In this document: positions 1 through 23,386 of the stretch, piece by piece
Numbering within the stretch: the stretch's first letter is position 1
How the letters are laid out: every line of letters starts with the position of its first letter
Origin: Macrostomum lignano
Lineage: Eukaryota
Direction: 5' to 3'
NCBI GenBank assembly: GCA_002269645.1
Contig: NIVC01002353.1
Location: 1 to 64,000, forward strand
Length of the DNA stretch: 64,000 bases
Position numbers and translations under genes: made by a program
The notes under the pieces: generated by a model
The model's database searches: none
What the model saw: only the letters and a program-made list of their open reading frames with translations
Told to the model about the DNA's origin: nothing

Positions 1-1959
1 CTTAGTGGGAGAATTGTTGAGATATCAAGGCTTAACAAGGGGAATTACTAAGATATCAAGCTTGAGGTCTAAAGCTACCTACATATAGTTTTTTTCATTT
101 TTTTAATTCTGAACAATTTTATTTAAGTAAAGGTGATTTACTAAACTAAATTAAGAATGCTTTTAATTTTTTTCATTTTAAAGGATTCTCATAAATTTTC
201 ATTCTTTGCTTATTGGGCATCCTAAAAGGGGGCACTAGATTGCTTGTAGAATCTAAGACTATACAAAAACTTAAGTATCTATATAAATTATCTTAATAAC
301 TTTTTTTAATTAGATGTATGGATTATACAAAGCATTTAATTAAAATAATAAAGAAGTAATAGCAAATTATTTTTAAGACGAAAGAAAGAAGTCTATTATA
401 GTTAAGTTAACACTATTTATCTAACCTCACCTTTTATGATTTTTAGCTATTTGCCAAAGATCAAAGTCAAATAGTAGTTACAAGGGTAATACTTTAGATA
501 AGAAAGGCATTAAAGACTGCCATCAAAAACCAAAAGAAAATAATTTCTAAGAATGCTTGCTATAGACCTATGTTTTTGATAAATTAAATTAAGTGTGTAA
601 ATCATTAATTGTATACCTTAGGTATTGAGGAACTTTTGGTTTTTAATTGCAATTTATACTGAGTTTTTCTAGGGTAACTCTTAAGTTTTTGGGGTTTAGG
701 ACTAAAGCAATAGATTTTTCACTTTAAGTGCACATTGTGTAAATAGAATATATAGTAGGCTAAAGTCAAAATTAATATTTTAATTTTTAATGCAAATGGA
801 GCTCTTAAGTCCTTAAGGTTAGATACTCTAGTAACAGAGCCATGTGCACATTGCATATATAAAGTGATAAAGGCTAAATTTAAGGTTAATGTTTAAATTC
901 TCACTTCAAAAAGAGCTCCTAAGTCCCTAGATTTAGGAACTCACAATAAAAATTTATAGTACTATGTGCACATTGTAATCTATTAATCTATATAACCCCT
1001 ATTAATCTAGGTAATAGGGGTTAAAGTTATAAATATATTTTTTCAATACAAAGGCCTAAAGTAGTCCTTAATCTCTATAGTCAAGGACTCAAGCAATATA
1101 TTTTCTATGCCACATATGCATTTTTGGTTAGTATAGTAAGGGTTGAAGTTAGGATAAATGTAATATTAGCCATTCTTCTTATGCAATAAGAAGCATTCTT
1201 CTTGTGCATTCTTCTTGTGTATTCTTATGTGATATATTAAAATTATACTATTGCCATTGGATTTAGTATCATTAAAAGTTATTGGAAGTTATTAGAAATC
1301 AATTAACTATAGGTAGATAAGATAGAACCATTATAGATAGACTATGAGAAAAATTATGACTATAAATATAGTAAAGCTATAGAAAGCAAGGCAAATGCAC
1401 TTATTAACAATAAAGAGCTAGCATTAGTCAAAGCTGGCATTAATATATAAGAGCAAGCAAGCAATACTATGTTTATTTCATAGCCTCATCATACAAAGAA
1501 AAAGTATGCTCAGAGTCCCATCCTAACCTAATCAACCCTAAGACTCTTCACATTACCAATTCCAGAACCAGAATCAGTTCGGATCTTCCAAGAAAAACAG
1601 CAGTATAACTATTTAACTCTGTTGATATTTGACTGCCTTTAACAGCCTTACTTTGCAAAATTTTTAACTTTCTTCTTGGCAATTTTCATTCAATAATTAA
1701 GAGTTTATAGCAGGTATATCCCACTAGTTAAGGAGACAAAAAATTATACTTTACAAATTGGTTCTGGTTCTAGAACCAGAACAAGCAATATGAAGAGCCT
1801 CCCTTACTAGCCAATCATAAAGCAGAGTTAGCCAATCATTGCTTCATAAATAGAGCCAATTATTTTGGAGGCTAAAAAACAATAAAAATAGGGCTTAAGC
1901 TAATTGGCTTAGGTGTACTTATCATATATGTAAGGGTGATTCAAATGAACAAAAACAAA

Positions 1960-3150
1960 GAATGAAATATATTGGATGACTCAACAAACCTTGTAGGTAA
2001 AATGCATTTGTAGTTCAAGAGTGCCCAGTACAATAGTAGTTCTAAATGAACATTGACTGCAAAAACCAATGTGTTTCAACCCACTAGGGCCATGATCAAG
2101 GTATATTATTTATCAATCAACCAAACACTTAATATAAATAAACAATTGTACTATATAGTGTCAAATTGAAAATGGAAGATAAAAAATATACAAAAGAACA
2201 TAAAAAACTGAGGGTTGAAGTTAAGCAAGAAGAGAGAGTGAGAGAAGGAAAAATAAAATGTACATGCAAAGAACTGGTCAATCTCAAAACACCCTAAGAA
2301 GGTGACCCGCACCACTATGCAACAGCTGCACATAGAGGCTTGGGTTTTGAGCCTTGAAATGCAGTGCTTGCAGAATGCCAAGCTTGAATTCAGAATTGGA
2401 ACAATCAATAATCTTAAAAGCTCAATCTGTTCTCTGTCACAGCAGCTCTTGCACTCCAGAAGGTGGTCCTAGATTGCAGATTTCTTTAGCCAATGCTTCC
2501 TAACATTGGTGCCTTTTCGTTTTTCCCATGTATAAGATATTCTGATCATCAGAACAACAAAATTTATACATAACACCTGCAGCCAAAGCATGAGGAACAT
2601 AGGACTTGAGCTTGCTAACAAATTGACCCACATTGACTAAATGCAAAAACAATCCTAATTAATACAAGGATTGAAATATATCCTCAAAGTGTAGTGTTCC
2701 ACGAACGTAGTGTTCCACTATTTCCAAAAATATCTCTCAAGTTTCTTTTTCAACAAGTTAGATAGGATACCATTGAAAGACAAGATCATTATAGGGTCAT
2801 CCAGCTTTTCACCATGATTCTGCTGCAACCTGCTAGTAACCTTATCAGTGACAAACCTGAAAATTAAACAACTAATGAAATTGTTAGGGTATCCATTCAT
2901 GCTGAAAATCCTCTAATCAAATTGTTCACCTCTTTATCAAATGTGGACTCACCTCTTTATCAAAGGAAAATTGCAGTCAATGTTGATTTTAAGCTTTATT
3001 TATTTGCTATTAATTAAGCGACCAACTCTACCACAATAGTAGTTCTATCTGGCATGTACCAATTGATACAAGTTACATATGACTTAGTTAACTTAGTCAA
3101 TCCAAACAGTCATGATTGCTTACCTTTTAGGCTTTTTTGTTATATATTTT
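1960..3150 (-). mobile_element. Decayed Penelope-like retroelement (RT C-terminus plus GIY-YIG endonuclease relic)
   Basis: Manual minus-strand translation gives ..STFDKEVNNLIRGFSMNGYPNNFI (about 2870-2950, PLE RT C-terminal NGYP motif), GVMYKFCCSDDQNILYMGKTKRH (about 2500-2580, GIY-YIG core) and FKIIDCSNSEFKLGILQALHFKAQNPSLYVQL (about 2325-2420), with stops and frameshifts. Boundaries are approximate. Confidence 0.6.
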
Positions 3151-4404
3151 AATTGTTTAAACAATGTTATCAAGTATAAAAGATAGAGAATTGGGTCATT
3201 ACTAGTCATTAATTTTACCAGAGTAAGCAAGTAGCTCCTAGGTTCCTACTTGTACTTTTATTACTCGACCTTTCAAGTATTGTATCATAAAATATATTTC
3301 ATAGATTGTATTGAATTCAGTTACATTATAGATGAATAAATTAGTATCAATAGTTATAGTATTTTAAATGCACTTCTGAACAGTTTTTAAAGAATTCGAT
3401 ATTAAAAATATGTTGACTTTCTATTAAGTAAAAGTAATTTGATGGCAACTGTTTTGTGTAGTATTGATATGATTTGCCTCAGACTGAATAGTTGATGTAT
3501 ACTAAAAATATTAGATATAAATTAGTATATGGATTTATTTATTCATAAATATCTATTCTGTTGTGATTAAAATAAAGACCTAAACATTTTGATTTAAACT
3601 CATATATAACACAATGGACCATATTGACTAAATAGATTATGATCTTTAAATTGTTTTTATTAGACTTGATACTGAAATTTTTACTGAAATGGCAATCTAA
3701 TTTCATTTATTTCAAAATTTGCATTTTCTCATTTACCTACTATAGCTTTATTAGATAAGCTTTTATTTATAAGCATTGGTATCTTTGAAAGTAGTATAGT
3801 TTGCACATCAGTTCTAATACAAACCAAAACTGTCTAACAATAATTTATTTAAGGCTTTCAATTGAATACAGGCATAGTTATGGCATAGCAATAAAGCAAA
3901 GACAAGCTGCTATGTCTGCATAGTTTTTGCTTAACTATGATTTCACCAATGCCATTTAATAAACAGTGGTGTTGTAAATAAATTCTCTTTGAAAACATTT
4001 CATTCATACCAAAGCACAAGTGCAAGGATATTGTCAATGGCCTCCTAATGTTGAGACAATGGTTAAAATGGGATTTTATTGTAGCTAGTTACTGGGCATA
4101 AAACTGACTGCTTCAGTACAATGCAGCACACATTGTTTTTAATTGCAATGAACAACAATAAAAGTTTATATACTGGGGTGCAATGAGTGTTATATACTGG
4201 GATGCATGCTCGCAATATCGATAGGAAATGGTGTGAATTTTAGTCATATAGTTTTTGTGCATATTTACTTGAAAATACTTGTTGGTCGTGATTTTTTATG
4301 CTTTTATAATGCTACTAAATAAAGTACCGACTTCAGAGGTTTAAGTTTTTGTGTCAGAAAATAGTAGAACATAAAAGCCGACCAACTCAGTATTGTCCAG
4401 ATGC

Positions 4405-6069
4405 CTATGCCAGCTCAGCGTCTGCTGCAGATGCTGCTTGCAGTTGCTGATTCTCCTTCCGCCTCACACTGAACAGTTGAATGAAAAGCTCAAAGAATTC
4501 AAAGGTGCTGATAATGGACACGCCCAGCCACAGGCCGAGGATACCGCCGATGTCGGAGGCCAAATTTCGGGCCAGATAGGCCCAGTTCTCGCGCACAATG
4601 TTGCCCATTGTGGAGTGACTGTACACTGTGAGCTTGGCGAACCGCTGCAGCGCGTACGGGTCATTTTTAAGGTGCTCCATGATCTCTTCCAGCACTTCAG
4701 TACTGTCGCCCCTGCTCCTTGCCTCGTGCATTGTCCTCTGAGTCGCCTCCCATAGCGCCTGGCGCGTCTCGTTGGCATCATTTGGCCATTTGTTCTGCAT
4801 CACCCGCATCTCGTAGCGAGTGTTGTTACACTTCAGAGGGCAGTAGCTGTCTTTTTTCGTTTTCTTAGCCGATACTTGTTTGTGAATTTCATTGATGGCG
4901 TTGTCGTGGCACTCTTGTTTCTCCCTAACTGAGCTACTGTCGTTCGATTTTGCGCCCCTACTTTGCTTGAGTCTCTCCTCGTTGATGTGGTGACAGAATG
5001 TGATGTTGTGGCGGGTGATGTTCCTAAACTTAGCCGGCAGAGGCAGGATTTCGGAAACGCAGCGGCAGCTCTCGTTCAAAAAGTTTTGATACAAATTGAC
5101 CTGGCAGTCCCTGACGCTGTACCTGTATTGAGTGACCTTTCCGTATCTATCCACGAATTCTAATGGCTGCAGGCTTTCCTCTTCAGCGCATTTTCTCAGC
5201 ACCACCTCTTCAGTGTAGCCTAGTTGTACGTAGGTGCACGCATGCTCTTGTACATAAAATCCTTCGAGCATCTCCGGTCGCGTCCCTTTTTCCTGTATGA
5301 CAGCTCGGAAGCCTTTGGAGTATCTCAGTGAATCTTCCTCGCTGATGAAGTTCATCATATCTCCGACATACATGATCACACTGAGGCCGCCGTCTCTTTC
5401 GCCTCCCACCAGCAGATGCCGCTCCCTTGGCGAAAATGTAAAGCAACTGAAGTAGTTTGGATCAATGTACTCCGTGAAGTTTATGTATGAGCAGATTGTT
5501 CCGGCAAAATCACAGTGTAGAATCATCTCCTGGCTCTGTTTCGTGATGTTCACCTCGTGCAGATACGACTTTAGCGAGTTCAGCAAGTCGCCGTTTATCT
5601 CGCTGTCACTTTCGTTGTTTGGATCCCAGAAGCTGCGTATGTCAGACACTAGCTCCTTTATAGGCTTGTTGAGACTTCTAATTTTTGGATTGCGTTCGTA
5701 ACGCCGCAGACTAAAGTGGCTGGTGGCGCAGATGCTGATGTCGGGGAACACAAAATTGGTGCTGTAGACACTTATCTCAGTGTTCACTGGCCCTTCGTTA
5801 AATCGGCTAAAGAGCGAGATCAAATGAGCGCTGAAGCCCGAAAATGCAGTTATAATTATGAGCAGCCACACGATCCTGTGAAGAATGCTGGAGCCTTGAA
5901 AGATTTTATGAAACCCATGCGCTGATGTGCTCTCGCAGAACTGCTTTAGCAGCTTCTTTGACGGGCTTTCCCCAAAGCCGTCTCGCCGCATCTTCTCCAC
6001 CATCTTAGAGAGCTTGTTCGGTCTCGAGTTGCCTGCTGATTGTCTTTTTTCCGACGAATTGGTTGCCAT
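4405..6069 (-). CDS. DEG/ENaC (ASIC/FaNaC-like) amiloride-sensitive cation channel subunit, single exon, 554 aa
   Basis: FCESTSAHG pre-TM1 motif, TM1 RIVWLLIIITAFSGFSAHL, FPDISIC post-TM1 motif, Cys-rich ectodomain, and TM2 LASDIGGILGLWLGVSIISTFEFFEL with GxS filter. ATG at 6067-6069, stop at 4405-4407. Confidence 0.93.
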   Translation of the reverse strand: MATNSSEKRQSAGNSRPNKLSKMVEKMRRDGFGESPSKKLLKQFCESTSAHGFHKIFQGSSILHRIVWLLIIITAFSGFSAHLISLFSRFNEGPVNTEISVYSTNFVFPDISICATSHFSLRRYERNPKIRSLNKPIKELVSDIRSFWDPNNESDSEINGDLLNSLKSYLHEVNITKQSQEMILHCDFAGTICSYINFTEYIDPNYFSCFTFSPRERHLLVGGERDGGLSVIMYVGDMMNFISEEDSLRYSKGFRAVIQEKGTRPEMLEGFYVQEHACTYVQLGYTEEVVLRKCAEEESLQPLEFVDRYGKVTQYRYSVRDCQVNLYQNFLNESCRCVSEILPLPAKFRNITRHNITFCHHINEERLKQSRGAKSNDSSSVREKQECHDNAINEIHKQVSAKKTKKDSYCPLKCNNTRYEMRVMQNKWPNDANETRQALWEATQRTMHEARSRGDSTEVLEEIMEHLKNDPYALQRFAKLTVYSHSTMGNIVRENWAYLARNLASDIGGILGLWLGVSIISTFEFFELFIQLFSVRRKENQQLQAASAADAELA

Positions 6070-7950
6070 TAGCTGGTTATCTTGACTACTTGACCAGTGG
6101 TTTGGTTTGCTTTGTAAAAGTGAGTTTCAGACTCTAAAAAGCCTGGCTTTACCTGTCTGTTCAGATTTTATCAGAGTTCTTGTCCACCTCTTGTCTTCCA
6201 TTCCACGCAGCTTTTGCCCACTCATCCCAGCCAATCTTATGCACTTTGGTCGGCCACTGACCCAGTTTTCCCTGGTTGGCTGGGACGAGCCCCGGCTGTT
6301 CATGATGCCCCAGCTGCATTGGAATCGAGAATTGGGACTCCCGGAAGTCAAGCCCTGCGGGGTTCCGGGAGAACAAATGCATTTCTACCTTTCCTCCTCC
6401 CATTGCAAAGGAGAGATAACTGGCAGTTCGTTAATTTTGCTTGTTTGCTTCGTGGGAGATAAAAATAGTTTATAAATTGCTCTTATTTTTGCCCAGAAAG
6501 AAATGAACTTTTGAATAAGCCGAGAAAATTAACAAATTAGGCTTTGCCAGATTATACCTTATATTGCAGTTGATTTGGGCTTTGGTTTTATTTTTGTAGC
6601 ATTTTGAATTGACTGTCAAAATATCTCGTGCTGTTAGTCTCGGCTTTTTAAAAAGAAAAATCAAACACATTGTTTGCTTAACATCAAGCGCGCTGCAGAT
6701 CTGTAGAAAACTGGGCTGCTGTCTCCATTCATGTGGAGTTGTCACGCGCGGTTTTGACATTTTACTGCAAACTTCTTGAATTTGATTGCTGTTGCTCCGA
6801 ATGCTTTTGCTAGTTTCGATTGCTACCATCGCGGGTGTTTCTATCTACAGACGTTATGATCTTTGCCAGCAGTAGTTGTACTTCTGTTGCTGTTTTACAG
6901 GTGTTTTTCTAATATTTAAGTCTGTCAGAAGCAATCAAGCAAATCCGCCACCCTAGTGTTTTGTCCAACTGTCAAAGTCGCTGATAGCCAGACGTGTCAC
7001 GAGCCTAGCAATGGGCTGCGTTGCATCAACTGGCACCGCTTGCTTATGTATACCGGTAGAACAGACAAATTTGCAATTGCAAAAATTCTTAAAGGGAATG
7101 TCTGGGTTTGCTTTGTGTAAGCCTCCGATTAAGTTAAAATGTCAGTCTGTACTGCCTGGGGTCTGCGACCTTAATCGTTTGAAGCATTGGATAGACATTC
7201 TAAGCACTACTGTCACTTTTTTGCTACCTCTGTACTAGTGGCAGTCAGCGCCAGACGCCTCTTGTTTTGCAGCAGCACCCTCTTGCATCGCAATAAATGT
7301 GCTGCGGCAGCCTCTGCTGATACCGGATGCTAGGGGAGTTTCCTGGAAATGGTTTCAATTATCTATCTACCGTTTCTGATTAATGCATTGGTGTCTGACC
7401 CAAAGGCTAAAATAACTCTTGGAAAATCGCAATCGTTGGTTAAAAACGGAAGTTGGCAAAGCGCACCGTTAAAGCAATTTAATATCTTAGCAGAATTCCG
7501 AAGTGTCGTAATATAAACTAGAGTGTACGACGGTGACCTTGGACGCTTCTGCAATTACGATGCTGATAAAAATTCGTAATTCCCTCAAATCGAATAGTGT
7601 GCAGCTCAAAAAAAGAAATGGATCGGTCCTAGTGCATTCAGTTAAGTATAGCATTAATTAGGCTAAGGGAAACTAAATAAGGACAATTATTAAAGCGGGC
7701 GTTTGCGTTCTTGAAAAATTCATGCGCATTTGTTTTACTTGAAATAAAGTCAAGACAAAACTTTATTTTGGTTCAAAAGCACGAAAAACTTTACCGGCTA
7801 AAAAGCCTGCTTTATATTAAACTATTTGTTATTGATCGGCATACTCACCGCACCCCCCAACCCGCGCTAGCAAGTACATGCAGCGAGAGAGAGAGAGAGA
7901 GAGCAAAACAACTCTACCTAGCCCCGCCCCCAGCGCGCACGTAGGCCAAG

Positions 7951-8926
7951 CTATCACATTATCATACAGTCTAGCCAACAAGTGAGTCAAAATAATGGAG
8001 ATTTTACCATAGACAATTGACAATCAGGGTGCAATAATGCGCCAAAAATGCACGCTGGCGGCTTTCAGCGTGCAATAATGCAACAACACAAACTTTATAT
8101 TTTACGAAAAGCAAACGTAGCAAATAGTTGAACATTTTTAACGAGCTCTTCGTCTAGTAGTCAGTGCTCTAGTAGTAACTCGAAAACTCAGTAACTCACT
8201 CAGTACTCATCAGTACTCACTGATCACCGAATTTGAAGTTGTAATTGCTGAAACTACCACTCAGATGAATATGTAGCTCCGGTCGAACAGTATCGGCCGA
8301 AGATGCTTGAACGTCAACCTTGACATTTTGGACTGACGTCGTCATTCCAACACTTGCCACCCGCTTTGGGACCTCGGAGATAGACGTAGCATCCCCCGCC
8401 GAATCCATATCGCCAGATGGTCCGACGATAGCCACAGACTTATCGTTGGTCGCAGAAGAGGAACTGGCTCCATACAGCGATGCTGACAACACGTCGGACA
8501 TCTTGCCCTCGTCCTCCTCATCTCCTCGTCCTGTCTGTCGACAATCGCTTGCAGTTCAGTTGTGGAACCTCCAACATCCGGAATTGATTCCGAGTCTTCA
8601 CCCTCCACCAAGGGAATCAGATTGAACAGTTCCTCCAGAGTAGGTAGGAGCGGCTCATCATCGAACATCGTCCGCTCGATCAACGAATTTCTGTCCATGA
8701 GCTCTACATGCTTCTCGATTTCCGCCGTAGTCAAGCCGGTTATGCAATTGTCCGGGAATTGAGACAGATGAATCATGTTTTCAAATGAACGCACACTGAG
8801 ACGAACAAATATCGCGCTGTAGTGGAGAGAAAGATATTCCTTGCCTCCCTCAACCCTGTTCTTTGCAAATTGCCATAGACAAAAATGAATAGCCACTGTT
8901 GGCTAGTCTATATGATAATGTGATAG
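7951..8926. mobile_element. Unclassified non-autonomous DNA element with 30-bp terminal inverted repeats
   Basis: 7951-7980 ctatcacattatcatacagtctagccaaca versus the reverse complement of 8897-8926 ctatcacattatcatatagactagccaaca (28/30). AAG flanks both ends (7948-7950 and 8927-8929). Confidence 0.65.
8217..8776 (-). pseudogene. Acidic about 186-aa cargo ORF inside the TIR element, broken by one frameshift near 8520
   Basis: MIHLSQFPDNCITGLTTAEIEKHVELMD... joins DEEDEGKMSDVLSAS...ELHIHLSGSFSNYNFKFGDQ* if one base is restored in the gaggag run. No recognisable catalytic motif. Confidence 0.45.
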
Positions 8927-11451
8927 AAGCACGGCTTGCGCGTGCAACAACGCCATAGACACTCGTGGTCCTAGGCGTTGTTGCACTTGCAAGCCGTGCA
9001 CTATCTTTCCATTGTTTAGCAATTTGACGATCATTATTCACATTTTTAATGCAGAACAATCCACTACTACAAACAATGCATTGTCTGTAGGATCGTCAAA
9101 CAGAAAAACAATGCAAAGAATCAGCGGTCGCAGCACGTGACAACGATTTGTCTATGGCTCGCGCCTACCGGCGCTCGCCAGACAATCGTTGTCACGCACT
9201 GGGACCGCTGATTATTTATCCATTACTACTCTACGTAAAAGTGCAGCGCATCCTCTATGGGAAAAAAGGGTCCAAGATAGCTGCGGTTTATCTTTGAAGG
9301 GGTGGTTACGGACTAGGGAAAGCGTAGGAGCGGTTGTATACAAATGCTTGTAAAAGCAGATACCCAGATAGCGCTGTGTCTTATCCAGCTGAGGGTAAAG
9401 ACTGACCCGACCTCCCACTGCCAAATGACCGGGCGATCGCTGGAGAGATTTCTGCGCACACTTTTGGGAACAAGAAAGGTTTGCAATTGAAGAGAAGGAA
9501 TGGGAGAGGCTTGGAGCGGAAAAGCTGCTGATCTGCGGGTGTATCATCATGGAGCCGGGAATAGCTAAGGCGCTATTGCGTTTTTACGTACCCTATGCAG
9601 CGTAACTACAAAGAAATCTGGTCATTTCGTGTTCAGCGCGCTTGTATTTTTGGAAGCTGCATTGGCTTTAGAGATTTGATTTATAAGTTGAACTACTTGC
9701 AAGGAGGCGGTTATTCATTGTGCTTACAGCAATAAAGCGCAGAGCGAATGACTTGCTTTTTTTTTCTAGCTTGTAACGAAGTAAATTTACCAAATGATAT
9801 AGTAAGTACATGCATGTAGGCGCCCATAGCTGCTTTCTCTTGGATAAAACACACGTGACATATTTCTGTCATGTGTTCGCTTCTGATTGCTTGGCCTTGG
9901 AACTAGCTTCAACGAATTGTCCTTTCGCCGATTTTCCATGGCATATCTATCCCAGCAATCCTCGGCTGATTCATCTTAGGCTCGATTAACCCGTAGCCTT
10001 TCTTCGCCGGCTCTTTCGATGTAAACTTAAAAAATTTTCTTCAAAGAATCTTCTCTACCCCCCCCCCCGACGCAGGCAGCTGGGCGGGATGGAGTGTATT
10101 GGCTCTGGTTCGGCCTGTTAGGCAGTCAGTTGTCGTTCCTACCCTCTCTTCTGCCTGCTTGATCTCGATGACATTTTCGATATCGATATCGGCTAGCCTT
10201 CACAAATCCTTCCGGACCAGCTGCCTTTTTTCCTCTCGATTTCTCTTCTGGCAGCAATATACAGGAAATCTTGGGGTATCCAACCGCCCTGTCTCAGTTT
10301 CTTGACCGCACCTCTCTTTTTCTGCCTCATTTTCCGCACCTGCTGGTTCGCATTTATTACCGCGTTTGCTGCGGCGGCACTAAATGTTTTGCGGTAGTAC
10401 GAATTTTTTTGCTTTCGGCAGCAAATACGAGCGTAATTATATTGGGGGGAAGGGCGCGAGCATCTGTTCGTATTTGCTGGCAGAAGCACCCTCAGGTGCC
10501 GGGCGGAACCCTTTTTTGCCTCGCATCTTCCAGTTGTCCGCCACTTGCTTTTCATCTCACTGCGCACAGACAGGAATTTGTTAGAATCGTCTTGCCGTGC
10601 GCTGTCTGTTCGAGCCGTTACATCATTGGCTTTCAATATGGCAATTTAAGCCATATTTGTCTAGCGAATCTGGAGCCTTGCTGCGTCCGTGTTATTTTAG
10701 TAAACCTCTGGGGCCCCACAAGCACCCGTAAGAACTATGTCTGGGTTTCAATTGCATAAGTACCTAGCTCTTGAAGTTTTGTATTATTGGAACTTTGCAG
10801 ACTGTTTGAATCCCAAGGCGCTTCTTCCGAATTCCGGCCTAATCTACGCAGCCTTGCTCTCTCGCTGGCTTTGCCAATTAGGCACGCTGCTTAATGTACT
10901 GCGCTGCATAACTTTTCAAACTTTTCGGTTGAAAAAGCCTTAGGTTCGCAGCTCCTGCTGGGACTTCGCTTGGGGTCTCAGTAGATGATTGCCTGTCGGA
11001 AAGTCGCTGGAATGAACTGGGCCGGTCCAATTTCTCTGTGCTCCACGAGCCGTGACGCATATATACATGTCGCGGATTGGATTAGTTTGAATTATATTTT
11101 AATGTATCAAAACTTAAGAAACTCTGTTAGATAAAATGAAATTTGCCCGGTTCTTAGTACAGTTTTTTAGACATAAAGGCCAAGCTGTATTGTACCAGAT
11201 AATGAACTGCAGTGCCCATCTAAGCAGACTACCGATCATTACTTATCGTAAACTCGCGAAAGGCGCGTTCTGAATTTTTCATCCACTGACCGAATCGACC
11301 CATTAAACCCACACGCTGCCTCTAGCCCTACCGCAGGAGTTGAGGTTTTTTATAGCCTTAGTAGTTTTTAATATTACCGCATAATTTATGAATTAGTATA
11401 GTTAGTATGGGATTAAGACTTCATTGAGCCCTGCACCCCGCGCCTTTCCAG

Positions 11452-12966
11452 GAGCCAGTCTGTCTGGCGCACTGCAGTCCGGCCTGGGCCTTCGCTCTCG
11501 CAAAGTGCGACTCCCCCGATCGAGTTCGGCACGCACGTCTTCGGCACGTCTGGGGTTTTCCGCCACGCCGCCAGGGCGTCGAGCAGCCCGCCGAGCTGCT
11601 GACGAGTCTGGCGCGCGGCCAGGGCGGCTCCCCTAGTGCTGATCGGCGGCCGCTTGTCCTACTGATCAGCGCCTCAGGCAGTCGAGGCATTTGTGCGGCC
11701 GCCCTGCTGTCCGATAATGCTTTTGAAGAAGCCGCTGAGCCGTCTGCGGACACCTCCGGCCGGCTCTGGTGCCGCTTCCGCCTGGCCGATGTACTGCCAG
11801 ACGTCGGGGTCTCCGACGACGCCGATTTGCCTCTGCTGGTGACGCCGTTCGGCGACGCGGTCGATACAGACGGTCGGCCGCTCGGCGAGTGCCGCAACCT
11901 GGCTGCGGTAAATGGCGTTTGCGGTTGCCGTCTGGTGCAGCGCCTGGCCGCCGACTTGGCCGACGCGCGGGCCGCCGCAGCGCCCGCACCGAGCCAGCTC
12001 GGCCGAATCGCTGGCGAGCGGAGCGGCGCCGAGCCTGACGAGCTGACGGTCGCCGCCCGGTTGGCGCGCCGGCTTGGCCGCAGTCACGGCCGCGTCCTGC
12101 TGGCCTGTCCGGCCGGCAGCCGACGCTACAATCTGCACAGCCCAGCCAGCGACCACGACCTGGCCGTGGTCTACCGGGCGCCGCTCCGCTCGCTGCTCGG
12201 CCTGCCGGGTCTCCGACCAGCCGACAGCCTGCAGTCAAGCGGCCCGGCGGACCCCATCGACTGCCGGGCCACCGAGCTGGGCAGGTTCCTTGAACTGCTG
12301 CTGGCGGGGGACCCCAAGGCTGTGGAGTGTCTGTTCCTGCGGCAGGAGGACCTGCACTTCGGCCTGCCTGCCGACCGGCTCCGTCTTGCCTGGCTGTTTG
12401 AGTCAAAGCGGCGTTTCCTGACGCCCCGCCTGCTGAGGGCCTACCGCAGCGAGCTGGAGGGCGCCAAAGGACTGCGCAAGCTGGACAGGCTGAGGGCGCA
12501 GTGGCTGGCCACGGCTAACGAGGGAGTGGCAGGCGCAGCCGTAGACGGTGTGACCCCAGGTTCGGTCGAGGAAGCAGCGGGCGGAGCGAAAGCGACCGCC
12601 CTGGGCGCGAGGCTGCGCAAGCTGTACTGCATTCTGCTCCGGCTGGCGGACTGCTGTGCGCACGCGGCCTCCGGTGAGCTGCCGGTCCGATTCGAGGCCG
12701 GGTCAGAGCGGCACCGCCTCCTCAGCTGGGTCCGGTTCGGGCCGCCTGCGGCGCTCAGCCAGGCGGACGAGCTGCGCATGCGGGACGCCCTGCGCGATCG
12801 GCTGGCGGCTGCGTCGTCTGCGGCTGCCGCTGCAGAGGCGTCGGTAGCACCGGAGACACTGGCGCGGCTGCAGGCGGAGGCCAACGACTGGCTGATTGAG
12901 CACCGGCTCGCCTGCCACGCTGATGGCGATGAGCGGCTGCTGGCCAGCGAGCTGGAGGGTGACTGA
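11452..12966 (+). CDS. Predicted nucleotidyltransferase, Pol-beta superfamily, RlaP/Nuc-transf (PF10127-like); terminal exon, upstream exon not identified
   Basis: Motifs LLACPAGSRRYNLHSPASDHDLAVVYRAP (GS..D.D), ELGRFLELLLAGDPKAVECLF and RKLYCILLRL..GELPV. The frame is open from 11428 to the stop at 12964-12966. A candidate acceptor ctttccag ends at 11451. No in-frame ATG precedes the domain, so the start must come from another exon. Confidence 0.8.
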   Translation, partial: EPVCLAHCSPAWAFALAKCDSPDRVRHARLRHVWGFPPRRQGVEQPAELLTSLARGQGGSPSADRRPLVLLISASGSRGICAAALLSDNAFEEAAEPSADTSGRLWCRFRLADVLPDVGVSDDADLPLLVTPFGDAVDTDGRPLGECRNLAAVNGVCGCRLVQRLAADLADARAAAAPAPSQLGRIAGERSGAEPDELTVAARLARRLGRSHGRVLLACPAGSRRYNLHSPASDHDLAVVYRAPLRSLLGLPGLRPADSLQSSGPADPIDCRATELGRFLELLLAGDPKAVECLFLRQEDLHFGLPADRLRLAWLFESKRRFLTPRLLRAYRSELEGAKGLRKLDRLRAQWLATANEGVAGAAVDGVTPGSVEEAAGGAKATALGARLRKLYCILLRLADCCAHAASGELPVRFEAGSERHRLLSWVRFGPPAALSQADELRMRDALRDRLAAASSAAAAAEASVAPETLARLQAEANDWLIEHRLACHADGDERLLASELEGD

Positions 12967-13031
12967 TGGCCTTTTTTGGGCACATAGCAATTCATTCCAT
13001 TCTGCTTTTTAATCATGTCTGTAGCGGCCAG

Positions 13032-13846
13032 GATTTGCCTCTTACCTGACAGACTCGTCTCTTACCTGACAGATTTGCCTCTTACCTGACAGATTCGCCT
13101 CTTGCCTGACAGATTCGCCTCTTACCTGACAGATTCGCCTCTTCCCTGACAGATTCGCCTCTTCCCTGACAGATTTGCCTCTTACCTGACAGATTCGCCT
13201 CTTACCTGACAGATTCGCCTCTTGCCTGACAGATTTGCCTCTTGCCTGACAGATTTGCCTCTTACCTGACAGATTCGCCTCTTCCCTGACAGATTCGCCT
13301 CTTGCCTGACAGATTTGCCTCTTACCTAACAGATTCGCCTCTTACCTGACAGATTCGCCTCTTGCCTGACAGATTCGCCTCTTACCTGACAGATTCGCCT
13401 CTTCCCTGACAGATTCGCCTCTTGCCTGACAGATTTGCCTCTTACCTGACAGATTCGCCTCTTCCCTGACAGATTCGCCTCTTGCCTGACAGATTTGCCT
13501 CTTACCTGACAGATTTGCCTCTTACCTGACAGATTCGCCTCTTACCTAACAGATTCGCCTCTTACCTAACAGATTCGCCTCTTACCTGACAGATTTGCCT
13601 CTTGCCTGACAGATTCGCCTCTTACCTGACAGATTTGCCTCTTACCTGACAGACTCGTCTCTTACCTGACAGATTTGCCTCTTACCTGACAGATTCGCAT
13701 CTTGCCTGACAGATTCGCCTCTTACCTGACAGATTCGCCTCTTACCTAACAGATTTGCCTCTTACCTGACAGATTCGCCTCTTACCTGACAGATTCGCCT
13801 CTTACCTGACAGATTTGCCTCTTACCTAACAGATTCGCCTCTTCCC
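13032..13846. repeat. 20-bp minisatellite (ctgacagattcgcctcttac)n
   Basis: Direct tandem repeat of about 40 units. Confidence 0.97.
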
Positions 13847-14625
13847 TTTAGTCCCAAACGTCCCTTAGTGCGCAGGTAACAACCTGTGCGGCCAGAGAGG
13901 ACGAGTCCATTCATCCCAAGCCGCAGCTGTTTGCTTGTTTGCCTGAATTGTCAGCTTAGGCTCGATAGTGGTTCGGGATTTACGGGGAGACTCCCTGGCG
14001 CTGTCGCCCATTCATTTCATTCCATGCGAGTTTTTACTAACCTGGCGACATTCGCCCAGCTTCTCTTAGCTGCCTCATCGCTGTTGCTAAGCGAAGTCGG
14101 GCTGGATATTTTGTATATTCCCGGGCACCACTTTGCTGCTAAATGCCAGCCCGCTTCGGCAATTTCGCCAAATCCTTGCACAGTTTTGGTCAATCAGCGT
14201 CTGCTTTGCCGCTGTTCCGACTTCCAGCTTCCAGTCAGTTTGTTGCACCTCCTCGCTTCTTTCGGCACCACCGCAGCGGCGCCGCCCCAACTTTGCCCAG
14301 ATATAAAAACTGCCCAGTTAAGTCCGGGGAGCCATCAGGTGCAGTCAGCGCCTCCCTGATTGACGCCGTCCTGTTTTGATCGTCTGCGCCGGTGCTACCG
14401 TGTGGCTTTCCTCAGTTATGCAGTCAGCAGACAGGCGCACTTTTGCACTGCCTGCCCTTCTTTGATTACCGATGCGATGCACTGTTTGCCTGCTAATGCG
14501 TATTGCTGAGCCATTCATCCAGATAGATTTACTGACGTCACTGCGCACTTCAGCCTCGTCTGTACTGGCTTTTTCATTTGGCTAACTGCCGTTTTTAAGG
14601 CCTGTGGGGTCACAGTGGCTTATTA

Positions 14626-16482
14626 CAGTGACACAGTAGCTTATCAGTGACACAGTAGCATCAGTGACACAGTAGCTTATCAGTGACACAGTAGCTTATC
14701 AGTGACAGTAGCTTATCAGTGACACAGTAGCTTATCAGTGACACAATAGCTTATCAGTGACACAGTAGCTTATAAGTGACACAGTAGCTTATCAGTGACA
14801 CAGCAGCTTATCAGTGACACAGTAGCATCAGTGACACAGCAGCTTATCAGTGACACAGCAGCTTATCAGTGACACAGTAGTTTATCAGTGACACAGCAGC
14901 TTATCAGTGACACAGCAGCTTATCAGTGACACAGCAGCTTATCAGTGACACAGTAGCTTATCAGTGACACAGTAGCTTATCAGTGACACAATAGCTTATC
15001 AGTGACACAGCAGCTTATCAGTGACACAGTAGCTTATCAGTGACACAGTAGCTTATCAGTGACACAATAGCTTATCAGTGACACAGCAGCTTATCAGTGA
15101 CACAGTAGCTTATCAGTGACACAGTAGCTTATCAGTGACACAGTAGCTTATCAGTGACACAATAGCTTATCAGTGACACAGCAGCATCAGTGACACAGCA
15201 GCATCAGTGACACAGCAGCATCAGTGACACAGCAGCTTATCAGTGACACAGTAGCTTATCAGTGACACAGTAGCTTATCAGTGACACAATAGCTTATCAG
15301 TGACACAGTAGCTTATCAGTGACACAGCAGCTTATCAGTGACACAGTAGCATCAGTGACACAATAGCTTATCAGTGACACAGCAGCTTATCAGTGACACA
15401 GTAGTTTATCAGTGACACAGCAGCTTATCAGTGACACAGCAGCTTATCAGTGACACAGCAGCTTATCAGTGACACAGCAGCTTATCAGTGACACAGTAGC
15501 TTATCAGTGACACAGTAGCTTATCAGTGACACAATAGCTTATCAGTGACACAGCAGCTTATCAGTGACACAGTAGCTTATCAGTGACACAGTAGCTTATA
15601 AGTGACACAGTAGCTTATCAGTGACACAGTAGCTTATCAGTGACACAGCAGCTTATCAGTGACACAGTAGCATCAGTGACACAGCAGCTTATCAGTGACA
15701 CAATAGCTTATCAATGACACAGTAGCTTATAAGTGACACAGTAGCTTATCAGTGACACAGCAGTTTATCAGTGACACAGTAGCTTATCAGTGACACAGCA
15801 GCATCAGTGACACAGTAGCTTATCAGTGACACAGCAGCTTATCAGTGACACAGTAGCTTATCAGTGACACAGCAGCTTATCAGTGACACAGCAGCTTATC
15901 AGTGACACAGCAGCTTATCCGTGACACAGCAGCTTATCAGTGACACAGTAGCTTATCAGTGACACAGTAGCTTATCAGTGACACAGTAGCTTATCAGTGA
16001 CACAGTAGCTTATCAGTGACACAATAGCTTATCAGTGACACAGCAGCTTATCAGTGACACAGTAGCTTATCAGTGACACAGTAGCTTATCAGTGACACAA
16101 TAGCTTATCAGTGACACAGTAGCTTATAAGTGACACAGTAGCTTATCAGTGACACAATAGCTTATCAGTGACACAGCAGCTTATCAGTGACACAGTAGCT
16201 TATCAGTGACACAGTAGCTTATCAGTGACACAGTAGCTTATCAGTGACACAGCAGCTTATCAGTGACACAGTAGCATCAGTGACACAGCAGCTTATCAGT
16301 GACACAGTAGCTTATCAGTGACACAGCAGCTTATCAGTGACACAGTAGCTTATCAGTGACACAGCAGCTTATCAGTGACACAGTAGCATCAGTGACACGG
16401 CAGCTTATCAGTGACAGCAGCATCAGTGACACAGCAGCATCAGTGACACAATGTCTTATCAGTAATACAGCAGCATCAGTGA
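14626..16482. repeat. 19-bp minisatellite (cagtgacacagtagcttat)n with 17-bp variants
   Basis: Direct tandem repeat that decays at the right end. Confidence 0.97.
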
Positions 16483-16550
16483 CCTGAGCCGGTACCTGCA
16501 AGGCCATCATTCCCACTTTCCGATTGATGCGCAGCCACCCACAGCCAGCA

Positions 16551-17582
16551 ATGACCTCAACAGCAGCAGAAGCCGGCCTGGAGCCCATGGACCCGACGCT
16601 GAGCAGCCTGGTGCACCAGAGCCAGAATATGAAGTGGATCTTTGTCGGAGGCAAAGGCGGCGTAGGCAAGACGTCCACCTCGTGCTCGTTGGCGGTGCAG
16701 CTGTCCCGCGTGCGGCCCTCCGTGCTGCTGCTGTCCACCGACCCCGCCCACAACATCTCTGACGCCTTCGACCAGAAGTTCTCCAAGACGCCCACCCTGG
16801 TGAAGGGCTTCAGCAACCTGTACGCCATGGAGGTCGACCCCTCCGTCGGGCTGTCCGGCCTGCCCGACGAGCTGGTGAATGACGACTCTGGCGCGCTGCG
16901 CAGCCTCGTGTCGGAGCTGATGTCCGCGCTGCCCGGCATCGACGAGTTCATGTCCTACTCGGAGGTGCTGCGCCTCGTCGAGGACATGGACTTTAGCGTT
17001 ATCGTGTTCGACACCGCACCCACCGGGCACACGCTCCGCCTGCTGTCCTTCCCGTCCACCATGGAGGCCTCCATGGGCAAGCTGGTCCGCTTCAAGAACC
17101 AGCTGGCGCCCCTGGTCGGCCAGCTGGGCTCCGTGCTCGGCCTCGGCAACATGCGGGCCGAGGAGCTCGGCCGCCAGCTGGAGGACCGCCTGCCGCTGGT
17201 GCGCCGCGTCAACGAGGAGTTTCGCAACCCGCAGCGGACCACCTTCGTGTGCGTCTGCATCGCCGAGTTCCTGTCGCTGTACGAGACGGAGCGGCTGGTG
17301 CAGGAGCTCACCAAGCTCGGCATCGACGCGCAGAACCTTGTGGTCAACCAGCTGCTGTTCCCCAGCCCCAGCAGGCCGCCCTGCGCCCTCTGCTCCTCCA
17401 GGCACAAAATCCAGCAGAAGTACGTGGCCCAGATGGAGGACCTGTACGAGGACTTCCACATCGTGAAGATGCCGCTGCTGGAGCGCGAGATCCGCGGGCT
17501 GGCCATGCTGGAGTACTTCTCCCAGTTCCTGCTGGCGCCCTACAGCCCCGAGACCGCGCCGCCGCTGCCCAAGCAGCTCTGA
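16551..17582 (+). CDS. ASNA1: ATPase ASNA1/GET3/TRC40 (tail-anchored protein targeting), single exon
   Basis: [16 protein letters not shown]-loop, [56 protein letters not shown] and C-terminal CxxC (CALC). The ATG at 16551 is preferred; an in-frame ATG also lies at 16527. Confidence 0.96.
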
Positions 17583-17842: not shown

Positions 17843-20706
17843 CAGCCTGTGACTTCCCCGCCACTGCATCCCCAGGTGGTTACTCAGGCCTGTGACTTCC
17901 CCGCCACAGTGCATCCCCAGGTGTTTACTCAGGCCTATGACTTCCCCGCCCCAGTGCATCCCCAGGGTTACTCAGGCCTGCGACTTCCCCGCCCCAGTGC
18001 ATCCCCAGGTGTTTACTCAGGCCTGTGACTTCCCCGCCACAGTGCATCCCCAGGTGTTTACTCAGGCCTATGACTTCCCCGCAACAGTGCATCCCCAGGT
18101 GTTTACTCAGGCCTGTGACTTCCCCGCCCCAGTGCATCCCCAGGTGTTTACTCAGGCCTGTGACTTCCCCGCCTCAGTGCATCCCCAGGTGTTTACTCAG
18201 GCCTGCGACTTCCCCGCCCCAGTGCATCCCCAGGTGTTTACTCAGGCCTGTGACTTCCCCGCCCCAGTGCATCCCCAGGTGGTTACTCAGGCCTGTGACT
18301 TCCCCGCTTCCAGTGCATCCCCAGGGTTACTCAGGCCTGCGACTTCCCCGCCCCAGTGCATCCCCAGGTGGTTACTCAGGCCTGTGACTTCCCCGCTTCC
18401 AGTGCATCCCCAGGTGTTTACTCAGGCCTGTGACTTCCCCGCCACTGCATCCCCAGGTGTTTACTCAGGCCTATGACTTCCCCGCCCCAGTGCATCCCCA
18501 GGTGTTTACTCAGGCCTGCGACTTCCCCGCCCCAGTGCATCCCCAGGTGTTTACTCAGGCCTGTGACTTCCCCGCCCCAGTGCATCCCCAGGGTTACTCA
18601 GGCCTGTGACTTCCCCGCCCCACTGCATCCCCAGGTGTTTACTCAGGCCTGTGACTTCCCCGCCCCAGTGCATCCCCAGGTGTTTACTCAGGCCTGTGAC
18701 TTCCCCGCCCCAGTGCATCCCCAGGGTTACTCAGGCCTGCGACTTCCCCGCCCCACTGCATCCCCAGGTGTTTACTCAGGCCTATGACTTCCCCGCCCCA
18801 GTGCATCCCCAGGTGTTTACTCAGGCCTGTGACTTCCCCGCCCCAGTGCATCCCCAGGTGTTTACTCAGGCCTGTGACTTCCCCGCAACAGTGCATCCCC
18901 AGGTGTTTACTCAGGCCTGTGACTTCCCCGCAACAGTGCATCCCCAGGTGTTTACTCAGGCCTGTGACTTCCCCACAACAGTGCATCCCCAGGTGTTTAC
19001 TCAGGCCTGTGACTTCCCCGCCCCAGTGCATCCCCAGGTGTTTACTCAGGCCTGTGACTTCCCCGCCTCAGTGCATCCCCAGGTGGTTACTCAGGCCTGT
19101 GACTTCCCCGCCCCAGTGCATCCCCAGGGTTACTCAGGCCTGCGACTTCCCCGCCCCAGTGCATCCCCAGGTGGTTACTCAGGCCTGTGACTTCCCCGCT
19201 TCCAGTGCATCCCCAGGGTTACTCAGGCCTGCGACTTCCCCGCCCCAGTGCATCCCCAGGTGGTTACTCAGGCCTGTGACTTCCCCGCCCCAGTGCATCC
19301 CCAGGGTTACTCAGGCCTGCGACTTCCCCGCCCCAGTGCATCCCCAGGTGTTTACTCAGGCCTGTGACTTCCCCGCCCCAGTGCATCCCCAGGTGTTTAC
19401 TCAGGCCTGTGACTTCCCCGCTTCCAGTGCATCCCCAGGTGGTTACTCGGGATCGCGACTTCCCCGCCCCAGTGCATCCCCAGGGTTACTCAGGCCTATG
19501 ACTTCCCCGCAACAGTGCATCCCCAGGTGTTTACTCAGGCCTGTGACTTCCCCGCCCCAGTGCATCCCCAGGTGTTTACTCAGGCCTGTGACTTCCCCGC
19601 CTCAGTGCATCCCCAGGTGGTTACTCAGGCCTGCGACTTTCCCGCCCCAGTGCATCCCCAGGTGGTTACTCAGGCCTGTGACTTCCCCGCTTCCAGTGCA
19701 TCCCCAGGGTTACTCAGGCCTGCGACTTCCCCGCCCCAGTGCATCCCCAGGTGTTTACTCAGGCCTGTGACTTCCCCGCAACAGTGCATCCCCAGGTGTT
19801 TACTCAGGCCTGTGACTTCCCCGCCCCAGTGCATCCCCAGGTGTTTACTCAGGCCTGTGACTTCCCCGCAACAGTGCATCCCCAGGTGTTTACTCAGGCC
19901 TGTGACTTCCCCGCCCCAGTGCATCCCCAGGTGTTTACTCAGGCCTGTGACTTCCCCGCCTCAGTGCATCCCCAGGTGGTTACTCAGGTCTGTGACTTCC
20001 CCGCCTCAGTGCATCCCCAGGTGGTTACTCAGGTCTGCGACTTTCCCGCCCCAGTGCATCCCCAGGTGGTTACTCAGGCCTGTGACTTCCCCGCCCCAGT
20101 GCATCCCCAGGGTTACTCAGGCCTGCGACTTCCCCGCCCCAGTGCATCCCCAGGTGTTTACTCAGGCCTGCGACTTCCCCGCCCCAGTGCATCCCCAGGT
20201 GTTTACTCAGGCCTGTGACTTCCCCGCCTCAGTGCATCCCCAGGTGGTTACTCAGGTCTGCGACTTTCCCGCCCCAGTGCATCCCCAGGTGGTTACTCAG
20301 GCCTGTGACTTCCCCGCCCCAGTGCATCCCCAGGGTTACTCAGGCCTGCGACTTCCCCGCCCCAGTGCATCCCCAGGTGTTTACTCAGGCCTGCGACTTC
20401 CCCGCCCCAGTGCATCCCCAGGTGTTTACTCAGGCCTGTGACTTCCCCGCCCCAGTGCATCCCCAGGTGGTTACTCAGGCCTGTGACTTCCCCGCCTCAG
20501 TGCATCCCCAGGTGGTTACTCAGGCCTGTGACTTCCCCGCCCCAGTGCATCCCCAGGTGGTTACTCAGGCCTGTGACTTCCCCGCCTCAGTGCATCCCCA
20601 GGTGTTTACTCAGGCCTGTGACTTCCCCGCCCCAGTGCATCCCCAGGGTTACTCAGGCCTGTGACTTCCCCGCGTCAGTGCATCCCCAGGTGGTTACTCA
20701 GGTCTG
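17843..20706. repeat. 45-bp minisatellite (tcaggcctgtgacttccccgccccagtgcatccccaggtgtttac)n
   Basis: About 2.9 kb direct tandem array with indel variants. It generates the spurious QACDFPAPVHPQVFT ORFs. Confidence 0.97.
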
Positions 20707-23386
20707 TGCGGCGCCAGCCAGCATTGAATCCAGACTGCATCATTCAGTATATTTGGTTTGTTGTATAACCGCTGCTTGCTTTGCACTGTTTGCATATTCC
20801 TGTTAGCTGCTACATCGATCAACTTGTCGGCGATGCAATCCACCTGTTCTTTACCTGGTGTTACTGCCGCGTTTTTGCTCTGTTTCATCTGGATCCAACT
20901 GCTAGTGAGAAGATCTTGTTTTTTGATATGCGAATTAAATTTTAACCAACACTAATTCCAATTCAAAATGAAAATCTCCACCGGTTTATTGTTTTGCCTC
21001 GTTTTGCCCCTCCATGTCGGTGGCTGTCCTGTTTGAGCTGCCGCAGTTTTCGTTTGTTTTTGTTCATCATTTGCGTGGTTTTTTGAGGCTTTTACTCTTA
21101 CTTACTAGCTGTGTCGGATCTTACTGTTAACCTAATCATCTATAACTGATGCGCTAACGATGGCAAGCAATATATAATTATCGGTCCATCTGTGCTTTGA
21201 GTTCATTTATTTTGCAAGCCAGCAAAGCGTTTTGGTTTCAGTTGGTAATGCTAGATTTCACTCTGAAAAGTTTCACTTTGGAGCTGGGCTGACGCCGTCA
21301 GCAGCCGCGCTCCCATCAGGCGCAAGTTGTGTTGCTGCCTGATGCTGGCCTCCGCCGCCTCTTCTTTTCTTGTATTTTCTTTGCTACTTGGTAGCTGCCG
21401 GCCTTCCAGTGTTGCCAGTGTTTCTTCTAGTCAGAACGTGTTCCGCTGTCATCCAGCCTCGCTGCCGCTGCCTCTGACGTGCGGCCGCGTGGGCGGCTGG
21501 CGTTTGATGGAGCGCTGAGTGCGACGAGGTTGAAAATTAGCGATTGCCAACGGCTGCCTCGAACCTTGCTGTCATCTTCACCAGCTTCCTGGCCGGTCCG
21601 TCAGCTCTTCGCGTTAATTAATCGTTCAGATGACCTCAAGAAGTCTCCAATGCGGAGGTGACGTCTCTTCAGTCAAGTTCAAGTAGATCAAGTTTTTGTA
21701 AACACGCGATTGCCAACGGCGCGTTTTCTGTGCCTCTGGTTTGTTTGCACTTGTGGAGTCTTCGGCTTTGCGAACTTCTGTCTGGCCCGACTTGCGCAAT
21801 AAAAATAATATCGAACTTTCTTTTACTTGCATGTATTTTTACGGACGCAAGACAGTCGCGCGCCCCAGGGTCTGCGCCGCGGCGAGACAGCCAGCCTCCC
21901 CATAGTGATGCATTGACCAGGTGGGGTGCAGCATCGACTTCTGCGCCTTTTCTGCCTCTGCCAGACATTGCAGACCGCTGCCTTAATGACGACAGCATGC
22001 CTTGGCAAGGCCAAGGTTCCTATTTCTACTCCCTTCGTACTTGTGTTTGCCAATATCTGACTCTGGCTTCGCCGCTATTGAAAGCTTTCAACAACAGGTG
22101 CCACTGCGAGCTTCTGTCGGTTGGTTTAACAATGCCAAACTCCTTGTCTTCTTGAGGTTTCAAAGCAGCTGTCAAACATTTCCGCCTTGTTCCATTTCGG
22201 AATTTTTTCGCATCAATCGGGAATGCCGGCACTCACGAGCGAAAACTGAAATATTACTACAGAATTACTTCAATACATAATGCTTTGCAACTGCCGGTAA
22301 CATTTGCGTTAAATTAATGCTTCATCAACGTTCTGATTCCTCTAAGAGCAGCCGGTTTGACCCAGGTTGGCGTCGCTTGCATTTGATTGCCCTGTATCAG
22401 TTTAATTTGGGTGACGCTCGAATTTAATGCTTGCTCGGCCCGCCTGCCTGACACACCGTCCATAGATTTTATCAATTCTTCAAAGCGACCTCGGGCAGTA
22501 AACCGTTCCATCCTCGGTCTATCGGCATTCAGCTTATTTAGATTCGCGTCTTGGTTCTCTCTACTACCGAACAGCGTCACTTCGGAAGCAGTGTTGTTAC
22601 ACTTTTCTATATTTTTATAATCCCTTTAAATGCTAAGCCTCGATGTGGCAGAAGCGGTTTTCATTGCTTCCGTTACCTACAGCTGTGACATTTTCATTCG
22701 GCTGCCGCTGTCGAAGCGCCCGGGTGAAAACAATCTGTGCCGCTGCAGTGTTGATTGTTGTATGGAATTATTTAGCACGCGACAGCTTGGAAATCGCGGC
22801 GTCGCCCTTCCACCCGTCCTCAGCTGCCCAGTCTTGCCGAAGCCTTTAGGGTGTCATTTATGCACCCCAAGGTAGCGCAGCCTGCGCATCGACTACCTGT
22901 CTGTCAGCCAGACTGCAAGTGGATCGAAGGCTCCGATTGCTTTTCTTATTGCTGTTTTATTTTCAGCAGCTGGAGAAAGCAGCGCAACAGCTTCTTGTGC
23001 AATTCCTTGCCTGCCTGCTACCTTCGGGATGTAGGGGAGAAAGAGAGACAGAGAAGGTTCGCTGCTGCCCTCACTTTTGCTACCAGAATCTTGTGTCTCT
23101 ATCCTCGTTCCGGAAAGGTATGCCACAGCTGCATGCACGGTTTTCAAGAAGCTTCATGCAGTTATTAGTTCGCAGAAGTACTGCGTTTGTGGAGGCTTGT
23201 GATTTTTGGACTATTTTTTGGATTGATTGGAAGGAAGGCCTAAGAAGGATTAAGAAAGTCGACTAATACGAGTACATTCTTTAAACTCAGTGAGGGGGCC
23301 CTTGACTCACCGCTCCGGCAGGTGAATTTCTGCGTGCGTTCATCTGTGAGATTAATCTCCAACCCGCCTCCCGCAGCGCAGTCCAC

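Follow-up and report, generated by a model that had tools for sequence, protein, structure and literature searches.

YTH is a eukaryotic domain whose representatives are known only as non-catalytic readers of N6-methyladenosine (m6A). Work on RlaP enzymes, which make up Pfam family PF10127, has until now been confined to bacteria, where they are accessories of RNA-repair ligases. Biochemical data on the family are limited to the Pseudomonas enzyme, for which a 2025 preprint reports template-independent addition of one or two nucleoside monophosphates (NMPs) to the 3'-OH of RNA, a preference for damaged RNA and the restoration of tRNA function after repair; its crystal structure combines a nucleotidyltransferase (NTase) domain with a helical domain that is closed by a C-terminal helix (PMC12776372).

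Here we describe a gene of the flatworm Macrostomum lignano that joins these two modules in a single protein. It lies on contig NIVC01002353.1, within a stretch of 64,000 nucleotides (positions 1 to 64,000) that was analysed as a whole and is referred to below as the window. An earlier note, made from the letters of the sequence, had read it as a bacterial or phage-type RlaP, domesticated in an animal genome and either acquired horizontally or patchily retained. We think it probable that it is instead an intact, single-exon YTH-RlaP gene belonging to an old and patchily distributed eukaryotic family, translated from an AUG donated by the spliced leader, and that its product is likely to be an RNA 3'-end nucleotidyltransferase with a YTH guide. 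The gene and its orthologues are already public as hypothetical, "YTH domain-containing" or "nucleotidyltransferase" proteins. A literature search found no description or test of a YTH-RlaP fusion, the founding bioinformatic paper on RlaP being outside the reach of that search, and the gene id Mlig012231 gave no match in the literature either.

Domain architecture and family of the encoded protein

The assignment of the C-terminal half to the PF10127/RlaP nucleotidyltransferases of the Pol-beta type, with an intact active site, is supported by several profile comparisons. The GS..SDHD catalytic motif and the two downstream blocks from which the earlier note had proposed this family are present, as GSRRYNLHSPASDHD (residues 222-236), ELGRFLELLLAGDPKAVECLF (residues 275-295) and KLYCILLRLADCCAHAASGELPV (residues 390-412). 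With a score of 36.2 bits (E 6.9e-9) the protein passes the Pfam RlaP threshold of 23, the match taking in only profile positions 5-97 of 249. When it is compared by hhalign with 21 stand-alone RlaP proteins, residues 206-489 fall on columns 15-246 of a 266-column profile (99.7% probability, E 2e-26), and the domain is therefore whole. PHROG 388, a nucleotidyltransferase group, is matched at E 3.9e-13, and Foldseek searches of the BFVD viral models return phage and giant-virus nucleotidyltransferases. When 100 homologues are aligned, no variation is seen at G222, S233, D234 and D236, and conservation reaches at least 90% at S223 and D270. The domain, which a linker separates from the N-terminal half, can be divided into the NTase core, a helical C-terminal part and a WL..R helix at its end; an insert of some 30 residues, rich in Ala and Gly, lies near residues 350-385. 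In an AlphaFold2 (AF2) model, residues 276-502 are all-helical with a per-residue confidence (pLDDT) mostly of 80-95, which fits the C-terminal helical domain of RlaP. A family profile run against PDB sequences matched no RlaP chain, and NCBIfam gave no match to the protein.

The N-terminal half had been interpreted differently in the earlier note, where a degenerate copy of the catalytic motif was taken to indicate a tandem arrangement of an active and an inactive NTase domain. The stretch in question, LVLLISASGSRG, is indeed present, but it corresponds to a strand of a YTH domain, and the tandem arrangement does not hold: profiles and the structural model show this half of the protein to be a YTH domain that has diverged. 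An hhalign comparison with the YTH portions of 26 family members, M. lignano not among them, gives a probability of 96.3% (E 1.8e-9), while the best of 30 shuffled controls reaches 4.9%. In a Foldseek search of the PDB with the AF2 model (pLDDT 77), the top 50 matches are all YTH domains (YTHDF2, YTHDC1, YTHDF3, CPSF30-YTH) at TM-scores of 0.62-0.72 on the target, YTHDF2 7ywb being matched at E 1.6e-5 with a TM-score of 0.68, a fold match to be read with the caveat that the alignment given to AF2 included YTH-bearing orthologues. The profile of the YTH+RlaP family likewise matches PDB YTH sequences, at E 1e-13 to 1e-6. Two RlaP-type NTase modules are found in some relatives, namely in a protein of the protist Platysulcus tardus (1025 residues; YTH + RlaP + RlaP) and in a metagenomic protein (554 residues), so that the family does include proteins with a tandem-NTase layout, but the flatworm gene does not have it.

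HMMER, run exhaustively against 1.84 billion representatives, yielded 197 matches, the best of which are proteins of 450-620 residues that match both halves of the query. All of the ten top matches that were scanned contain the Pfam RlaP domain and nine of them the Pfam YTH domain (PF04146); among the best 100 of the 197 matches, both Pfam domains occur together in 29. Members with the fusion come, among animals, from many gastropods, bivalves and a chiton, the annelid Owenia, the nemertean Lineus, the brachiopod Lingula and the sponge Corticium candelabrum, many of them on chromosome-scale contigs, and, beyond animals, from the choanoflagellate Salpingoeca kvevrii, the amoebozoans Balamuthia, Pelomyxa and Flabellula, the hemimastigote Spironema, the dinoflagellate Tripos and the stramenopile Platysulcus. 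Every close homologue with a nameable source is eukaryotic, most having the YTH+RlaP layout, and two stand-alone RlaPs among the closer matches, from Pharyngomonas and Lapot, are also from protists.

No vertebrate, arthropod, nematode, cnidarian or echinoderm homologue was found in the homology searches. The statement in the earlier note that the family is missing from standard vertebrate, fly and worm gene sets agrees with this, and patchy retention, which it had offered beside horizontal acquisition, fits the scattered eukaryotic distribution. The same note had associated vertical inheritance with a broad presence across animals: the relatives that we find are eukaryotic, which contradicts a domesticated horizontal transfer, but within animals they are patchy rather than broad. 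The simplest reading of these sequence comparisons is an ancient inheritance among eukaryotes that has been lost many times and has diverged quickly in the flatworm.

Start codon, locus and sister copy

The reading frame opens at 11428, after an in-frame stop at 11425-11427, and its sole in-frame ATG, at 12778, is codon 443; the gene therefore has no start codon of its own, as had been noticed before. The exon aligns over its full length with YTH-RlaP proteins of 450-490 residues from Spiralia and the choanoflagellate. The spliced leader (SL) of M. lignano is CGGTCTCTTACTGCGAAGACTCAATTTATTGCATG, with the 3' end ...TTGCATG, and its acceptors are enriched for [T/C]TNCAG (PMC8629364); flatworm SLs end in an ATG that can be used as a start codon (PMC12582326, PMC10468722). 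The candidate splice acceptor mentioned in the earlier note, which we identify as TTCCAG, conforms to this pattern. It lies 19 nt past the stop and is the only acceptor that puts the SL-terminal ATG in frame, and the chance of finding an in-frame acceptor motif in the 60-nt gap is about 6%. With the SL joined at 11452, the first YTH strand begins at residue 13, which gives the N-terminus the same length as in the orthologues. We infer from these features that the mRNA would be trans-spliced between TTCCAG and the following G (11451/11452), joining ...TTGCATG to GAGCCAGTC, and that the ATG of the SL would serve as the in-frame start codon of a 505-residue YTH-RlaP protein. A start codon supplied in this way could account both for the missing ATG and for the "partial" label of the corresponding NCBI model. 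The features of the locus are collected in Table 1.

Table 1. Coordinates of the YTH-RlaP gene, its parts and its flanking genes in the window
Feature	Position	Strand	Basis
Single coding exon, 504 codons + TGA (12964-12966)	11452-12966	+	Open frame; homology end to end
Predicted SL trans-splice acceptor TTCCAG, after a pyrimidine-rich run	11446-11451	+	Matches [T/C]TNCAG; directly precedes the frame
Diverged YTH domain (predicted), residues 13-168	11488-11955	+	hhalign, Foldseek, family profile
YTH strand (predicted), LVLLISASGSRG	11653-11688	+	Aligns with family VILIFSVNNqHGWHG and with the VILIFSVN / LLFSVNGSG strand of solved YTH domains
Complete RlaP (PF10127) domain, residues 206-489	12067-12918	+	Pfam, hhalign, PHROG, Foldseek
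Catalytic residues G222-S223 (12115-12120), D234 (12151-12153), D236 (12157-12159), D270 (12259-12261)	12115-12261	+	Conserved in homologues
ENaC/ASC amiloride-sensitive sodium channel gene	4405-6069	-	Flanks the YTH-RlaP gene; single uninterrupted open reading frame
GET3/ArsA ATPase gene	16524-17582	+	Flanks the YTH-RlaP gene; single uninterrupted open reading frame

A sister locus is present on the 533-kb M. lignano contig NIVC01000571.1, which is 98.3% identical to window positions 1452-13667 (12 kb) and has the same gene order; its positions 10001-11513 are the equivalent of window positions 11454-12966. The DNA of the sister copy keeps the same 504-codon frame, the in-frame acceptor and all catalytic residues. 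The protein encoded in the window is 97% identical to the M. lignano entry "hypothetical protein BOX15_Mlig012231g4, partial", which is encoded at the sister locus. The NCBI model of that entry begins 2 nt past the acceptor, out of frame, and is brought back into the true frame by a 10-nt pseudo-intron; this off-frame start and "intron" explain the "partial" flag as well as the unrelated first 28 residues of that entry. A 10-bp deletion in the sister copy, which the NCBI protein had led us to suspect, is an annotation artefact, since the DNA of the contig keeps the open frame. For annotation, the lesson is that the lack of its own ATG need not leave a flatworm gene incomplete when the one at the end of the SL is included, and that the public model of the sister copy probably has its wrong N-terminus for this reason. 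When the copies are compared at window positions 11537-11546, a 1-nt deletion and a 1-nt insertion are seen 6 nt apart, together with substitutions; four codons in helix 1 of the YTH domain are altered (RLRH versus LADR) and the frame stays intact.

The flanking ASC and GET3 genes and the second copy with the same gene order establish the gene as a resident M. lignano gene, present in two near-identical copies, and not a contaminant. In this respect the earlier description of the gene as domesticated rather than contaminating stands, whereas the horizontal transfer that it offered as one option is at odds with the eukaryotic homologues. It is true that the GC-rich stretch contains several long open reading frames on the opposite strand, as one might see if the frame were a product of chance or the contig an assembly contaminant, but the collinearity with the 533-kb contig, the adjoining ASC gene, which is animal-specific, and the significant homology of the frame over its full length have already refuted this explanation, to which we attach practically no weight.

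The base composition of the gene bears on another alternative, in which the flatworm would recently have received the gene from a bacterium or phage and domesticated it. The great bulk of PF10127 is bacterial and viral (PMC12776372), the gene is intronless, and its GC content of 0.71 (0.79 at third codon positions, GC3) is above the window mean of 0.49, so that the host-like composition claimed for it earlier is only roughly true. The GC and GC3 values of the neighbours (0.66 and 0.94 for GET3, 0.50 and 0.64 for ASC) show, however, that the host genes of the locus are also GC3-rich, and as both are single open reading frames, intron-poor genes seem normal here and give no sign of foreign origin. 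The best matches are eukaryotic YTH-RlaP proteins, and because M. lignano shares the YTH+RlaP fusion with other eukaryotes we regard a recent bacterial or phage transfer as excluded but for a very slim chance. What looked like a bacterial gene in an animal has thus turned out, on the simplest reading, to be an old eukaryotic inheritance.

Some further features of the window may be recorded. Minisatellites are very dense, at 13032-13847, 14611-16483, 17845-20708 and 47645-50031 and in about 25 further arrays; with units of 15-55 bp in up to 100 copies they occupy much of the intergenic space, and their lengths differ between the window and the sister contig. Ty3/gypsy-type elements lie at 57.5-63.9 kb, with reading frames at 57512-59266 and 60002-63870, both on the minus strand; one frame encodes protease, reverse transcriptase, RNase H and integrase (1131 residues), with a gag-like frame upstream, and the other is a truncated RNase H-integrase fragment. 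Positions 1-4000 are very AT-rich (GC 0.29-0.31), whereas genes and arrays in the rest of the window are rich in GC. Scans with Rfam and for tRNAs gave no matches anywhere in the window, and the spliced-leader sequence (the SL RNA gene) is absent from it.

Proposed function and the evidence weighed against it

By homology with the Pseudomonas enzyme, the protein would extend RNA at its 3'-OH by one or a few nucleotides, and its YTH domain would most plausibly pick out the substrate, through a modified base such as m6A or through another feature of the RNA. Taken together, the protein would be a reader-guided enzyme of RNA 3'-end repair or tailing. One could also speculate more broadly that YTH+RlaP proteins constitute an ancient eukaryotic class, possibly dating from the last eukaryotic common ancestor, in which a reader of modified bases delivers a 3'-end NTase to marked or damaged RNAs; this we offer as a tentative suggestion.

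A number of observations weigh against our interpretation. The Pfam YTH model (PF04146) leaves the M. lignano protein unmatched even at E up to 1, and the YTH half is eroded, keeping 13 of 28 family-conserved positions and having changed the other 15. Two positions of the aromatic cage are retained, W34 and W106, which we take to align with the first cage residue, W411, and the third, W470, of YTHDF1; W80, W113 and F15 are lost. The second cage Trp, presumably W465 of YTHDF1, falls in a variable loop and has no alignable equivalent, and the base-contacting Asp/Asn position of canonical readers, which we take to be D401 in YTHDF1 and N367 in YTHDC1, carries neither Asp nor Asn in the YTH-RlaP family. 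Since the second Trp cannot be placed and the Asp/Asn is not conserved, binding of m6A by the YTH half appears doubtful from the alignment. Between the two copies, the ratio of non-synonymous to synonymous differences (pN/pS) is 0.79 on 26 differences, which is indistinguishable from neutrality; it falls to about 0.5 without the clustered four-codon change, also not significant. No RNA ligase gene (RtcB or Rnl) is found near the gene, whose neighbours are the ASC channel and GET3, although the logic of an operon would not be expected in an animal genome. Expression and the trans-splice site are, moreover, what we infer from the sequence. Finally, in a neighbour-joining tree of the NTase domain (100 bootstraps), in which Spiralia and the sponge group at 86% and the choanoflagellate joins at 64%, M. 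lignano forms a long branch that stays apart from the other spiralians and groups, at 24-35% support, with Platysulcus and a metagenomic protein. This placing is not firm, and the case for orthology is therefore made from best hits, shared architecture and collinearity and not from the tree; there is also room for transfer from another eukaryote, by which the gene may have been acquired.

The erosion of the YTH half and its failure to match the Pfam model also speak for a different explanation, namely that the gene is a decaying relic, inherited but no longer under selection in M. lignano, with loss of function under way in the YTH half or in the entire protein. The same can be said of the pN/pS of 0.79, of the coding divergence between the copies, which at 1.7% equals that of the flanks, and of the identity to other spiralian members, which is 23-26% for the M. 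lignano protein (up to 31% to the choanoflagellate) as compared with 36-46% between Owenia and its full-length spiralian orthologues. A relic is, on the other hand, difficult to reconcile with a 504-codon frame that is intact in both copies, for which the chance in sequence of 71% GC, estimated from base composition, is about 2e-5, or with the retention of all catalytic residues and of 43 of the 62 family-conserved positions in the RlaP half. The copies differ at 15 amino acids, all of them outside the family-conserved positions (an outcome expected by chance in about 5% of cases), and both have the in-frame acceptor. From these comparisons of sequence we consider a functional enzyme more likely and the relic an improbable but not negligible alternative.

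A functional protein could also act as a sensor, as the earlier note had suggested in proposing anti-viral nucleotide signalling: the YTH domain would detect modified or foreign nucleic acid, and the NTase would make a second messenger or tag viral RNA as part of innate immunity. The fusion of a nucleic-acid reader to a Pol-beta NTase recalls sensors of the cGAS/OAS type, a patchy distribution with many losses is common among immune genes, and structurally similar NTases occur in phages and giant viruses. Against this, the PADLOC defence models gave no match, and for want of any matching defence-system model a signalling role is unsupported; the RlaP family is separate from the CD-NTase and OAS lineages, being listed separately in PMC10400998, and the known biochemistry of RlaP is confined to the addition of one or two NMPs to RNA 3' ends (PMC12776372). 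We thus regard a role in signalling as improbable, somewhat more so than decay, and retain RNA 3'-end modification guided by the YTH domain as the preferred function.

The occurrence of a YTH-RlaP fusion across distant eukaryotes, together with its loss from vertebrates, insects and nematodes, suggests a coupling between the recognition of RNA marks and the editing of 3' ends that has not been explored. If this is correct, RNA modification would be linked directly to tailing or repair by a route that is missing from all standard model organisms, and M. lignano, which can be made transgenic and is open to RNA interference, would be an animal well suited to work on YTH+RlaP proteins.

Comparison with known systems

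The protein is most closely comparable to the YTH+RlaP proteins of other eukaryotes, represented by Owenia fusiformis CAH1787254, Lingula anatina XP_013409525, Lineus longissimus XP_064635683, Mizuhopecten yessoensis XP_021347857, Biomphalaria glabrata XP_013065749, Corticium candelabrum LOC134179897, Balamuthia mandrillaris KAL6069548 and the protein of Salpingoeca kvevrii. It shares with them the order of the domains, a length of about 450-500 residues and collinearity from end to end, the invariant GS / SDxD / D catalytic set, the KxY..RLL and WL..R motifs of the C-terminal part and, in the YTH half, W34, W106 and the R148-N149 pair. It differs from them in being far more diverged (23-31% identity), with about half of the conserved YTH residues lost, and in having Ala/Gly/Arg-rich inserts, one exon and an apparent SL-derived AUG.

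With the bacterial RlaPs of P. fluorescens and P. aeruginosa, which are encoded in rtcB-rlaP-rtcA operons, and with NrdC.11 of phage T4 it has in common the PF10127 domain, the three catalytic acidic residues, and the succession of NTase core, helical C-terminal domain and closing helix (PMC12776372). The bacterial and phage proteins stand alone, however, at about 230-280 residues, and are encoded beside RNA ligases, whereas the M. lignano protein is fused to a YTH domain, has no ligase neighbour and finds its nearest relatives among eukaryotes.

The canonical YTH readers (YTHDF1-3, YTHDC1/2, CPSF30-YTH and Mmi1) resemble it in their predicted common fold and in the aromatic residues at the first and third positions of the cage, but none of the known YTH readers includes a catalytic NTase. 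In the M. lignano protein, neither the second Trp of the cage nor the Asp/Asn that contacts the base in these readers is recognisably conserved, and its ligand may thus not be m6A; binding of unmodified RNA by a YTH domain has a precedent in Mmi1.

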